DNA of 64,000 nt from Syncephalis fuscata S228 (taxonomy: Eukaryota; Fungi; Zoopagomycota): NCBI GenBank assembly GCA_025786725.1, contig JAHLTZ010000032.1:124001-188000 (forward strand). The letters run 5' to 3'. The translations under genes were made by a program, and so were the position numbers. The notes beneath the pieces are model-generated. The model saw only the letters and a program-made list of their open reading frames with translations, did no database searches and was not told the origin of the DNA. Numbering within the stretch: position 1 is the stretch's first letter; each line of letters begins with the position of its first letter. Shown here piece after piece: positions 19,612-27,819 of this stretch.

Positions 19612-21473
19612 ATGACTGCCTCTAATAGTGCTCAAGGCACAGCCAGCGCTATTTCCCACGAATCTTTGAGCCGCTACAAGTAAGTAAATTACATAGATAT
19701 GTACACATCTAATTCAGTACTAATATATGTATTGATAATAGCAAAAACTTTTATGCTCATCCAAAGAATCGACTAGCATTAAACGCTGTGGCTCGTGGTC
19801 GCATTCCTGATATTATTCTTAATCATGAGGTAGTTATACACGCTTACTAGTTAATATAGAATTAACCAGCTATTTGCAAATAGATTAGCCAACGTATTAA
19901 TCATCAATACTCTGACAAAATTGAGACAGAAGGTAATAAATGGTAAATTATTGGTTATTATCAACATTATTAACATTATTGCTATTATTATTTACTAATG
20001 AATAGGCAAGATCACTAATCAAAAATCCAGTGGTCGTTGCTGGCTTTTTGCCGGTCTTAATGTCATGCGTTTGAATACAATAGCCAAGTAAGCTTAGCTA
20101 ATACTTGTTATTATTAGCAACTTATCCTATCCATCTATAGACACAAGATTGAAGACTTTGAGCTTTCTCAAGGCTACCTCTACTTTTATGATAAAATTGA
20201 AAAGGCCAATTGGTTCTTGGAATCAATGATTGAATTGGCCGGACATGATTTGGAAGATCGCACTGTCCAGTTTTTGTTAAAGGACCCAGTTCAAGACGGT
20301 GGTCAATGGGATATGTTTGTAAGTCTTGTTGAGAAGTATGGCGTAGTGCCCAAAGCATTCTTCCCTGAGACGGCTCAAACTATCAATACGGCCCAATCAC
20401 GTACTTTGATCACTTCAAAATTACGTGAATTTGCTGAGCAAATCCGTAATCTGCATAGTGCTGGTAAATGTGTCAAGTAAGCTGACTAATAAACGTATAT
20501 TACCCGTAGATACTAACCAGTAGCATTATAGTACTATTCGTGCGGCCAAGGACGAAATGCTGGATGAAATCTATCGTATTATGTGTATTACTTGTGGCGA
20601 ACCGCCCAAGCACTTTACCTGGAGTTTCCGTGACAAGGACAAGAAGTTCCACGAATATGCTGATTTGACTCCACAGTCATTCTATCATGATCATGTTGCC
20701 TATAATGTAGGTCTAGAAATACTAATATACCGACTAATACTAAATAGGCCTATTGACACTAGGTAACCGAAACAGTATCGTTGATCAACGATCCGCGTAA
20801 CGAGTACTACAAGCTCTATACTGTTGCCTACTTGGGTAACATTAAAGGTGGTCATTCTATTCGCTACATTAACTTGCCAGTTGAAGAATTAAAACAACTG
20901 GGCGTTAAAACAATACAAAGTGGCAAGCCAGTGTGGTAGGTTTAAATGAAATCGTTTATAATTTGATCAATATATATATGTGTGTATATTAACGACATAT
21001 AAACAATAATCAATAGGTTTGGCTGTGATGTCGGCAAACACTTTGCACGACAAATCGGCGTATTAGAACTTAATTCACTGGATTGGGACCTCGGCTTTGG
21101 TGTCACCTTTGATCAAGATAAGGCCAATCGACTACGTTATGGTGAAAGTGCCATGACGCACGCTATGATGTTTACGGGTGTACACTTGAATGCCGATGGC
21201 CAGCCACAACGTTGGCGAGTAGAAAACTCATGGGGCGAAGATAATGGCGACAAAGGATTCCTTAGCATGTCAGACAAATGGTTCTCTGAATTCACTTATC
21301 AGGTAAGCTGTTTAGACATTTTAACGAACGAAACATGGCCGTTAATAGATTATGATACACACCAATAATAGATTGTTCTAGAGAAGTCGGATGTACCCGA
21401 TGAAGTGCTGAAAGTATTAGAACAAGAACCTGTTGTATTGCCGCCATGGGATCCAATGGGTAGTCTGGCCTAA
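19612..21473 (+). CDS. LAP3: Bleomycin hydrolase / cysteine aminopeptidase (peptidase C1B)
   Basis: Catalytic motifs NQKSSGRCWLFA (Cys), MTHAM (His) and WRVENSWG (Asn); VWFGCDVGK; terminal PPWDPMGSLA*. About 8 introns. Confidence 0.95.
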
Positions 21474-23298: not shown

Positions 23299-25904
23299 AT
23301 GGAGCCTAGGTATGTTGCTATTTAAGCTCCTGTTTAATAACTAACGATAAATGATGATTACTAAATACAGCACACTTTCTATTAAAGTGGAAATATTCCG
23401 AGGTCAAAAACATGATACATTTATAGCATCTGTACCACTGGATACAACTGTGCGACAAGCCATTGAAACAGTAAGTAATTTAGACGTGATTATTTAATGA
23501 TATAGATTTAATGATTAATCATAATCAATCCATCTAGTGTTGTCATAAATTTGAAATTGTTGAAGATTGGAATTATGGATTGTAAGTGTATAGATTAATA
23601 CAAGTAATGTGTAAATTAACATAATTGATATACAAATAGTTTTAATGAAGTAAATACAAAATGGCTTATTGATTGGAGTAGACTAAATGCATACTCTACA
23701 GATATTCTGGTAAGTATAAATTATTAATTAAAAATAACGATTGGTTAGCATGAATTAATCTAAATTAATATAACAGAATGCACTAATGCTTCGTGTCAAA
23801 TCACCTGAATATCATGACCAAGAGGCACAAAGTATTAATAATCAAACACTTATGTACACCACTGGACGACCACCAATTATTACAGTACATCAACTGCCGA
23901 TGATTAATGAACATAGCGGTACTAATTCCAATCATCGATTTCTTTCATCCATTAGCGGTCTATTTGTTAAAAATGAAAAGCGTACATTAGATAGTAAGAT
24001 CCGTAATCGTCGCTTATATTTAGCGGTGCTATTATTTGCCGGTGATGGCCGTGTTTTAATTACTCGTGAAGGCCTTCTGCCTACAGTTTGCATTAATAGC
24101 AACAACGAAGCGCTATGTCGTGATTTGGAGTCTAATAGTGAGGAGTTTCGTTGGATGTTGCGTGATGCACTAGACTGGGAACGAGGTGTTGACAAACATC
24201 ATGGTATTAGTCTAATTCAGGCACAATCACGTCGTAGTCATCACCGTGCTACTCATTCGGCTCGAGTTATTACTCGTCGTCGTAAACTACAATCACTTGT
24301 TAGTAACAGTTTCAATGGATTTGGCGATGCAGCCAATCAGCACGATTTTAATACAGCAAATTTCAACAACGCAACAGCTACTAATGCCGAAGAAGCAAGA
24401 TGGCGCGATGCAGAACGTGCAGTACGCGAGGATTTTGCCGTTGCTGCTGCCGAATTACGTCGATTGTTAAGACTGCCCACTTTGGGTGTTATGCATGAAC
24501 GGCCCATTTCTATCAATTCTGGGAAGCTCATCTTCTACTTATGCTGCAGCATATTCCTACAGAAAGATTAAGCTTGTAGCACCAGATGCTGTCCGCACCG
24601 GTCTTTTACGTTGGCGAGATCGGGATCAAATGGATAAGAATATTTATGAGTGGCAAGAGGATTTATGGTGGCGTTATCAATGTGCCTACAATGGCCGTCT
24701 ATCTCGACTGGCGGGTGGTCTTTATGTGGCCGTTTTCTATGCAGAAATACGCTGCGTGGATTGAATGTACTTGTGCCACGGCGAAGACGTTCTTTTTGCC
24801 CGTCTTTAAAATTCGTAATAATACTTCGCTTACAAACGATGAGCTTGAATGGCTAGATAATCTATCGGGCGAATTGGACTCTATGCCTAATGAGGATACT
24901 GAGCCACTGGTTGCACCAGATAAATCAACAAAATCTGGATCAGCAAGTTCTAGTATAGCACAATCAAAGGAACGATCTGAACTTACATCCATTGCCGAAG
25001 AGAATATTGATTGTGTTGATTTCTGTTCAGCGTTTACTCGTTCCTATTACGGATTGCAGCGCGCTGTTCGAATGGGATGGCGTACCAAAGATATTTATCT
25101 TAAACGGTGCATTACTTTAGATAACGAAGGTAATCTGAAGTTTGACGATGATTTCCGCCGTTCAACTGCAGCCCGTGTTATACTTATCGTAAAACCGATG
25201 CGACCAGCTCAGAATCAATCGACAGAAAGTCATGAATCGGGTGATTTTGAAATGTTCCCATTGGCATTATTTGAAATGCTTCATCAGCAAACGTATAGCA
25301 CTGGTGAATCGTGTCAAGTGCGAGAGAAAACACAGAGTATTATGAGCAACTTGAAGAAAAGCGACAGATACTTCGACGATTGCTTAATGCTTCTAATGGT
25401 CCCTCTCCAGCACCACGTAACAATCCGGCACACCGGAGAAGAGCCACATTACCGCGAGACACGTCGGAATCATTAACAGATGATGAACAAATGGCCGAGA
25501 ATAATAGTAAAGCCGATAAGAATAACAAGAGCAACAACACTATAACGAAGAATGAAACTGCTTCATCAGATAGCATTAATAGTATTGCTAGCAGCAATAC
25601 CGCTACTCAGATAGCTAACATTGAATTGGCCATTGGGCAGTATGAAGAGGAATTGGCCACACTTCGTCGACAGACATCTGATTCACTATGGACACGACGG
25701 GTAATTACTTGGGATCGAGATCGAGCATTCCGTCGTACGATGATGCTGGCCAGTCCATCTGTAAGTAATGGCAGCGGTGGATCCGATCTTTCATACTTGT
25801 CGGGACCGCCATCAATACAAAAACTGCCTCTACGCAACTCGGTTAGCGCAACAATGTCTATGTCCATGACTCAACATTTACACATAAGCAAATACGCCGA
25901 CTAG
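23299..25904 (+). CDS. Uncharacterised protein: N-terminal ubiquitin-like FERM-F0-type domain plus ANKFN1/Wide-awake-like duplicated domain and coiled coil
   Basis: Four small 5' exons splice to MEPSTLSIKVEIF...LDTTVRQAIETCCHKF...NYGLF...KWL...RLNAY...LMLRVK. Then RRLYLAVLLF..GRVLITREGLLPTVCI...EEFRWM, GGLYVAVFY...GLNVLVPRRRRSF(L)PVFKIRNNTSLTNDELEWL and FEMFPLALFEMLHQQTY. About 3 frameshifts (near 24560, 24790, 25310). Confidence 0.7.
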
Positions 25905-26873: not shown

Positions 26874-27819
26874 TTATACTGAGCAATTGCCCAAAATAGA
26901 ATTCAGCAGGTGGGCAGAGCGCACAATTGCTCGCGCAATAAATGTATCGACTCGTTCGGCATTGTCTCGATAGTAATCGATACTGAGGTCAAGTTTGTCG
27001 GTGGCATTTGCCGTTGTATAGGTAGGAAACACGTATCGGCAGTCAAAGTGATGCGCTGTGTTGACCCAGTTGATGGCACACGCGGCTATATTTATAGTGG
27101 GCGTTTTAAAGCAGCGCAGCCAATTGTCGTGCCACTTGGCAAACCGGCCAACTCGAATGTCTTGTTCCATTTGATCCAAGTATTTATCAAAGCTTCCGTT
27201 AAATCTTGTATCAATTGTCTTATCAATAATGTATTTATCCCAGACCATGTGCAAATTAGTCGACTTTGATTCCCAAAGGCAGTTTAAATCGTTGCCACCG
27301 TTAGCAAATCCACCCGAATGTAATGGTTGCGAAACATCTCCCAAAAAGTGCAATAAAAACTTAAGGGCTTCGGTGCGTTCATCGAATGGTGCATCGCAGC
27401 GAAGTCGATTGGTGTAGTTTTGTAAAGCACCGACGATGCAGCGATTGCCTGGACAAAATGCTGGCAAATAGTCGCGGCAGGTGTCGTCCGTGTGTTCCGG
27501 CCCCATATCAACAAAATGAAGGTCAAAAGACCATGCATAAGTTTTGCTTAATTTAACGGTGTCGGCCCAGTTTGCAGCCAGTCCAAAGTCGCCATGAGAA
27601 TAATCATCAAAATCGAGAAGCTGTTGAAGATTATTGCGCACATTATCTGCTAGTAAACGCTGGGTCACCAAGCCAATAGCAGCATGGCCTACAGTAAGAT
27701 ATTGGCGTTTAATAAATGTTTTGCACTTGCTACTTTGTCTTACCGTGTTCTTTCCATGCATCGACTATAGAAAACAGAAACACACTGCAAACAAAAAATA
27801 AAATGGTAGGCTTGAACAT
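26874..27819 (-). CDS. Secreted S1/P1 nuclease
   Basis: Signal peptide MFKPTILFFVCSVFLFSIVDA, then mature WKEHG|H across an intron (about 27690-27743); WADTVK, LHFVD, LKFLLHFLGDVSQPLH, GGN and NLHMVWD zinc-binding motifs. Confidence 0.95.

Follow-up and report, generated by a model that had tools for sequence, protein, structure and literature searches.

Does Syncephalis fuscata, a mould-parasitising fungus, possess an intact relative of the animal protein ANKFN1/WAKE, and which parts of that protein would it have kept? The question is raised by a locus at positions 23299-25904, (+) strand, of a 64,000-nucleotide stretch of the genome of strain S228 (contig JAHLTZ010000032.1, positions 124,001 to 188,000, assembly GCA_025786725.1), hereafter called the window, where a mechanical reading of open reading frames (ORFs) yields several overlapping open frames. 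ANKFN1/WAKE is needed in animals for vestibular function, sleep-related behaviour and asymmetric cell division, and to our knowledge no fold or activity has been assigned to its most conserved part. The best overall explanation of our observations, which we hold to be very probably correct, is that the locus is an intact, transcribed gene coding for the ANKFN1 core preceded by a beta-grasp head.

Structure of the gene

We aligned contigs from the public run X1 to the window. They are identical to it save for four skipped GT..AG introns and five extra single bases, namely A after 24522, C after 24575, G after 24745, T after 24792 and G after 25345; apart from these, no differences are found over 2.3 kb. 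As the X1 contigs are devoid of the introns, X1 contains RNA. The word depth of the spliced transcript contigs is ~190-300, and the extra G after 25345 is also present in an independent soil-metagenome DNA contig (X2). Removal of the four introns and addition of the five bases generate a single open frame of 785 amino acids (aa) in five exons, from the ATG at 23299 to the TAG stop codon at 25902-25904, and the residues restored by the five bases are those conserved in the orthologues. Because the X1 contigs carry the five bases that give this open frame, we consider the frame changes to be assembly errors and not signs of decay. By the most parsimonious interpretation, five single bases are missing from the assembly, and the gene, which is present in one copy in the 29.4-Mb genome, is intact and expressed. 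Its parts are as follows.

23299..23309, (+) strand: exon 1, with the start codon (MEP and 2 nucleotides); X1 contig joint 23309/23371; the orthologues P0001 and P0002 begin at the same place
23310..23370, (+) strand: intron 1, 61 nucleotides, GT..AG, skipped in an X1 contig
23371..23470, (+) strand: exon 2, coding for strands 1-2 and the helix of the beta-grasp head; X1 contigs and orthologue alignment
23471..23537, (+) strand: intron 2, 67 nucleotides, phase 0, GT..AG; X1 contigs; position common to the Endogonales homologue on contig L003
23538..23581, (+) strand: exon 3 (CCHKFEIVEDWNYG..); X1 contigs; conserved in P0001, P0002 and P0003, left out of the public model
23582..23639, (+) strand: intron 3, 58 nucleotides, GT..AG; X1 contigs
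23640..23709, (+) strand: exon 4, coding for the remainder of the beta-grasp head; X1 contigs and open frame
23710..23776, (+) strand: intron 4, 67 nucleotides, GT..AG; X1 contigs
23777..25904, (+) strand: exon 5, with the five single-base assembly gaps; X1 contigs, and X2 DNA for the last gap

A first-pass annotation, made from the letters of the window, had proposed a spliced gene with about three indels; the need for correction is borne out, but five single-base gaps must be filled. Its start and end coordinates for the gene are exact, and the sequence blocks that it quoted are all present in the translation. The head motif that it gave as NYGLF must be amended to NYGFF, the Leu having arisen by reading into an intron donor.

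Relatives in fungi

An exhaustive phmmer search with a 184-aa in-frame piece against 1.84 billion representatives returned five proteins. The family members among them are the following.

Thamnocephalis sphaerospora RKP10595.1 (P0001): 49% identity, same length class
Syncephalis plumigaleata KAI8054654.1
Piptocephalis cylindrospora RKP14530.1
Logan contig protein P0005, Endogonales-like

A word search with P0005 led to Jimgerdemannia flammicorona (Endogonales, 74% identity), and one with the family alignment to at least three close relatives. Judging from these sequences, the family occurs in Zoopagales and Endogonales. P0004, also returned by phmmer, was rejected as a low-complexity false match.

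Several searches gave no relatives. A word-index protein search with the 184-aa region, a method blind to full-length relatives of a fragment, had no match; two pieces of the window had no usable match in a feature search of the ESM Atlas, Protein Data Bank sequence searches with pieces and profiles gave noise only, and the initial metagenome scan with the family alignment found no relatives.

Homology with the ANKFN1/WAKE core

Zhang et al. (2015, PMC4488434) based their definition of ANKFN1/Nmf9 homologues on ANK, FN3 and a set of three conserved non-motif domains, and they reported that unicellular and invertebrate forms have CRIB or RA domains. We compared the profile of the fungal family (A3) with that of invertebrate ANKFN1 (A4) using hhalign, which gave a match at 99.1% probability with an E value of 6e-19 over 395 columns, running from the D1 block to the C-terminal helical block. 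Pieces of the window itself also match the animal profile, collinearly and in the correct order: 23777-24520 at the D1 position (E = 4.7e-6, 33% identity over 73 columns) and 24793-25344 at the D2b-D3 position (E = 6e-5). By BLASTP, the Thamnocephalis orthologue matches L022, an invertebrate ANKFN1 with ANK and FN3, from D1 through D2 with 53.9 bits (E = 2e-11). Fungal members are 20-25% identical to the animal sequences. In a comparison by eye, five collinear blocks of the S. fuscata protein match the latter, and the Mortierella sequence of Ross et al. (2021) (PMC9210315 Data File S1) forms a bridge between fungal and animal sequences.

24002..24187, (+) strand: D1 block, residues 151-212, start of predicted Nudix-like domain 1; hhalign against the animal profile
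24422..24558, (+) strand: helix-strand block LG..HE.PI.., residues 291-336, part of predicted Nudix-like domain 1; aligned with animal ANKFN1, in part absent from the public model
24708..24855, (+) strand: D2 block, residues 387-436, GLYVAVFY in place of animal GLYLGYLK; BLASTP, hhalign, and by eye against PMC9210315 Data File S1
25171..25296, (+) strand: D3 block, residues 542-583, ..FPLALFEMLHQQTY; profile alignment and hhalign of the window piece
25611..25736, (+) strand: C-terminal helical block, residues 689-730, ..LW.RR.ITWDRDR..; hhalign of P0001 655-701 with animal 798-844, helices 334-404 in the animal model

From these alignments, residues ~150-730 are almost certainly homologous to non-motif domains 1-3 and the helical block of ANKFN1 (Nmf9, Drosophila WAKE/Banderuola), in line with the ANKFN1/WAKE relationship that the first-pass annotation had proposed from the order of the motifs. 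Of the published GLYLGYLK peptide, the aligned GLYVAVFY keeps GLY alone; other non-animal homologues diverge there too, with GLYVGLYY in Mortierella and GLYLSVLV in Monosiga (PMC9210315). The absence of ankyrin and FN3 domains noted at first pass also stands: neither Ank nor fn3 was matched by any window piece or fungal member with Pfam at E values up to 1, and the DNA upstream belongs to another gene. Likewise, low-complexity sequence follows the helical block in place of a C-terminal RA domain. The two blocks described at first pass as similar to each other are present and correspond to the opening strands of the two core halves. At the level of sequence their similarity does not exceed chance, and a test for an internal duplication was not significant: the pairwise score of D1 with D2 was reached by 195 of 1000 shuffles, and the comparison of their profiles gave 8% probability.

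Animal sequences were retrieved by scanning the metagenome collection for GLYLGYLK preceded by K or R; vertebrate ANKFN1 in the PMC9210315 supplement has P before this peptide and so lies outside the pattern, and none of the contigs was considered human. Of the 40 loci, ~19 are real invertebrate ANKFN1 exons or transcripts. Long open frames were found in three ANKFN1 contigs, L022 (1005 aa), L034 (1175 aa) and L019 (665 aa), all three with an RA-like C-terminus, with Ank matches in the first two and an fn3 match in L022.

As a side observation, invertebrate ANKFN1 transcripts of nearly full length, comprising ANK, FN3, the core and an RA-like end, are found among public metagenome and metatranscriptome contigs (L022, L024, L034, L019, L039 and others). 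Such contigs are a useful source of extra diversity for the ANKFN1 family.

Predicted fold of the core

We modelled the animal core of L019 (420 residues) from a mixed fungal-animal alignment (A5). The model (m6431049d21cc) has a mean predicted local distance difference test score (pLDDT) of 75 and a predicted template-modelling score (pTM) of 0.66. Superposition of the model on ESM Atlas clusters that bear the name ANKFN1 gives template-modelling (TM) scores of 0.79-0.84 over 412-415 residues, an independent confirmation of the model as well as of the identity of the metagenome sequence. Structure searches with its first half, by Foldseek and by a Foldseek-independent method, pointed to a Nudix-like fold. 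Model residues 333-391 form a helical hairpin, which matches many unrelated hairpins and whose second arm corresponds to the C-terminal helical block (window 25611..25736).

Neither a strict nor a relaxed form of the Nudix box GX5EX7REUXEEXGU occurs in the fungal and animal members, no sequence search connects the family to Nudix proteins, and our literature search found no publication linking ANKFN1 or WAKE with Nudix. Based on the model, the first half of the core (domain 1) probably adopts a Nudix-like fold lacking the Nudix box, the second half may be likewise Nudix-like, and a long helical hairpin is predicted to follow the two halves. The prediction concerns the region around the essential GLY strand, and hydrolase activity would be absent.

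The N-terminal head

After splicing, residues 1-84 make up a compact domain conserved in the Zoopagales proteins.

23299..23803, spanning introns 1-4, (+) strand: N-terminal beta-grasp (ubiquitin-like) domain, residues 1-84

In an AlphaFold2 model of the Thamnocephalis orthologue P0001, built from an 8-row alignment, the head is the sole usable part (pLDDT 62-70), and its topology assigned by DSSP is b-b-a-b-b-a-b. Foldseek matched it to the N-terminal domain of kindlin-1, the Get5 UBL, the ELMO1 RBD, FERM F1 lobes, PB1 and ubiquitin. Its top structural matches are all beta-grasp domains, with kindlin F0, FERM F1, Raf RBD, SUMO and UBX tied. Pfam matches of the head are all below the cut-offs: TUG-UBL1 with 20.4 bits (cut-off 23.3), RA with 17.9 (21), RBD with 15.3 (25.7) and Kindlin_2_N with 14.8 (23). 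On the strength of the model, residues 1-84 very likely form a ubiquitin-like beta-grasp domain. The first-pass annotation had seen a ubiquitin-like head resembling talin F0 or SHANK SPN; the beta-grasp assignment is upheld by the topology and by the structural matches, and the F0/SPN type is not, as Raf RBD, FERM F1, SUMO and UBX are inseparable.

A head of the same kind is encoded by two upstream exons (782-904 and 976-1176) of the Endogonales contig L003, with a phase-0 intron at the equivalent point (EE/SCKHF in L003, ET/CCHKF in S. fuscata), and by eye the curated Mortierella sequence starts with the apparent second half of a head. Because of these head exons, the shared intron position and the apparent half-head, the head-plus-core architecture seems ancestral to this fungal branch.

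As a separate observation, the Jimgerdemannia flammicorona model (P0007, residues 1-125) appears to read through two N-terminal introns; the L003 exons are clean.

Proposed function

The beta-grasp head might dock the protein to an activated small GTPase or to another reader of ubiquitin folds, a situation parallel to that of choanoflagellates and invertebrates, in which this core carries CRIB or RA modules. If the core is a catalytically dead Nudix-type module, it would, together with the hairpin, offer a binding platform to partner proteins or to a nucleotide-derived ligand, without hydrolysis, and the hairpin may mediate pairing. Recruitment of the fungal protein to an activated small GTPase through its head is proposed by analogy with the holozoan homologues, which attach CRIB or RA to this core; a function as GTPase-recruited adaptor, like the Ras/Rap binding and the cortical role put forward at first pass, is conceivable but doubtful.

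Several observations weigh against our interpretation of the locus, from the gene model to the function of the head. Four of the five restoring bases are supported by RNA-derived contigs only. Pfam searches with all window pieces and all fungal members found no family at threshold in any part. The Thamnocephalis orthologue was folded poorly by AlphaFold2, with a mean pLDDT of 43, and the fold of the fungal core is transferred from the model of an animal homologue through the profile alignment. For the second half of the core (model residues 182-403), weak Atlas rows only point to NUDIX, with TM scores of 0.23-0.27 by query. Lastly, the match of the head to the animal RA profile is not specific (16% with hhalign), and SUMO, UBX and the Get5 UBL score level with Raf RBD and kindlin F0; binding of a GTPase by the head is therefore a guess.

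The last two points bear on an alternative that we regard as a serious contender, although short of probable, namely that the head is a generic ubiquitin-like module (of the Get5, UBX, SUMO or PB1 type) through which the core would be linked to chaperones, p97 or the ubiquitin system and not to small GTPases. The Get5 UBL, the p47 UBX, SUMO-2 and ubiquitin variants are within one Z unit of Raf RBD and kindlin F0, the best sub-threshold Pfam match of the head is TUG-UBL1 (E = 5.8e-4), and a specific profile match to the animal RA domain is lacking. However, RA, RBD and Kindlin_2_N are also among the sub-threshold matches, and the accessory modules carried by the same core in holozoan homologues, CRIB and RA, are GTPase binders (PMC4488434).

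Returning to recruitment by small GTPases, a broader and speculative proposal is that the ANKFN1/WAKE core might be an ancient opisthokont module, made of two dead Nudix-homology domains and a hairpin, that senses a nucleotide-derived ligand or holds a partner and that lineage-specific additions plug into small-GTPase signalling. Early fungi would have added the beta-grasp head, choanoflagellates CRIB or RA, and invertebrates RA. If so, the fungal version, a small architecture devoid of ANK and FN3, would be the simplest natural form with which to work out the role of the core.

Origin of the fungal genes

A single fungal case, that of Mortierella verticillata with the non-motif domains only, was reported by Zhang et al., who suggested horizontal transfer (PMC4488434); Mortierella, Hesseltinella and Trypanosoma cruzi were later treated as distant homologues, with sequences in the supplement (Ross et al. 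2021, PMC9210315; preprint 10.1101/2021.09.11.459924). Core-only homologues in fungi are thus already known in two Mucoromycota species. New here are the members in Zoopagomycota, a second phylum, and in Endogonales, the transcript-level proof of the gene, the recognition of the head with its shared intron, the statistically solid link with ANKFN1 and the Nudix-like prediction.

Acquisition of the fungal genes from a holozoan by horizontal transfer, as opposed to inheritance from the opisthokont ancestor, appears improbable to us. It would agree with the transfer proposed for the one instance of Zhang et al., with the phmmer search of 1.84 billion representatives, in which the 184-aa piece found Zoopagales and one Endogonales-like contig only, and with the fact that no Dikarya sequence match was seen. 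Nevertheless, members are found in two phyla, Zoopagomycota (three genera) and Mucoromycota (Endogonales, as well as Mortierellales and Mucorales according to PMC9210315). They harbour fungus-specific traits absent from the holozoan forms, namely the beta-grasp head with its shared intron position, the residues ENT following the GLY strand, and a KPMR motif, their identity to animal sequences is only 20-25%, and one Atlas row suggests that MHYT proteins of Basidiomycota may contain a core of similar structure. The occurrence of the core as a regular, expressed gene in at least two early-diverging fungal phyla therefore argues for an origin in the opisthokont ancestor or earlier and weakens the idea of horizontal transfer put forward for Mortierella. 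Together with its relatives, the S. fuscata gene shows that the ANKFN1 core is widespread in early-diverging fungi.

The Atlas row is an observation in its own right: a cluster of Basidiomycota 'MHYT domain-containing proteins' (~1018 aa) matches the ANKFN1 core model over 340 residues with a TM score of 0.61 by query. These may be Dikarya proteins in which a relative of the core is joined to a membrane sensor domain.

Public annotation, assembly gaps and neighbouring genes

In the public annotation, the gene is the hypothetical protein BDF19DRAFT_450701 [Syncephalis fuscata] (P0006, 772 aa). Compared with our 785-aa model, it starts 46 codons upstream, omits exon 3 and is otherwise identical outside the gap jumps. 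It crosses the frame breaks by invented introns, at the cost of 29, 11 and 7 residues (47 in total) in addition to exon 3, and the residues that it lacks are conserved in the relatives. The public gene model is thus wrong at exon 3 and at the gap sites, and single-base deletions in the public S. fuscata assembly corrupt gene models. A decaying pseudogene with an ANKFN1-like relic, which the five frame breaks within 2.1 kb of the deposited assembly and the invented introns might suggest, is extremely unlikely, as the deep spliced transcript contigs supply a base at every break and show no other difference, one of these bases recurs in the independent soil DNA contig, and the restored residues are those conserved among orthologues.

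The five missing bases lie within 0.8 kb of one exon (24522-25346), as compared with transcript contigs of seemingly the same strain. If that gap rate is typical, many S. fuscata gene models carry invented introns or truncations.

Two soil metagenomes (X2 and X3) contain 151-base contigs that match the gene in 25293-25794, with one G>A difference at 25594, which points to the presence in these soils of S. fuscata or of a strain very close to it. Judged from ORF translations only, the upstream neighbour (20217-21368, (+) strand) has the look of a bleomycin-hydrolase-type cysteine peptidase and the downstream one (26874-27761, (-) strand) that of an S1/P1-type nuclease.

Comparison with known systems

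Non-catalytic Nudix-fold domains are known in the C-terminal domain of MutY/MUTYH and in the regulators NrtR and AraR. The fungal family has no sequence similarity to any Nudix protein, and its likeness to these domains rests on the fold predicted for the animal homologue. As for the head, its sequence matches to kindlin and talin F0, FERM F1 and Raf-type RBD are below the family thresholds, and no FERM F1-F3 lobes follow it.

The homologues of Mortierella verticillata and Hesseltinella vesiculosa (PMC4488434, PMC9210315) have the same core-only architecture as the S. fuscata protein, and around the D2 block Mortierella and S. fuscata have approximately one residue in two in common, as compared by eye only. 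They appeared in the literature as isolated mentions, either regarded as a possible transfer or set aside as distant, and their head domain was not recognized (SMART_RA 'none'); S. fuscata belongs to another phylum, Zoopagomycota.

Unlike animal ANKFN1 (mouse Nmf9, Drosophila WAKE/Banderuola, CG45058), the fungal protein is devoid of ankyrin repeats, FN3 and a C-terminal RA domain and has the N-terminal beta-grasp domain instead, its GLYLGYLK peptide has diverged to GLYVAVFY, and long low-complexity inserts separate its blocks. Both nevertheless harbour the three non-motif domains and the helical block in the same order, and they have in common the GLY strand, LVP..K.RN..S..E.EWL, DF...P...FE..H..TY and W..R..I.(T)..RD.

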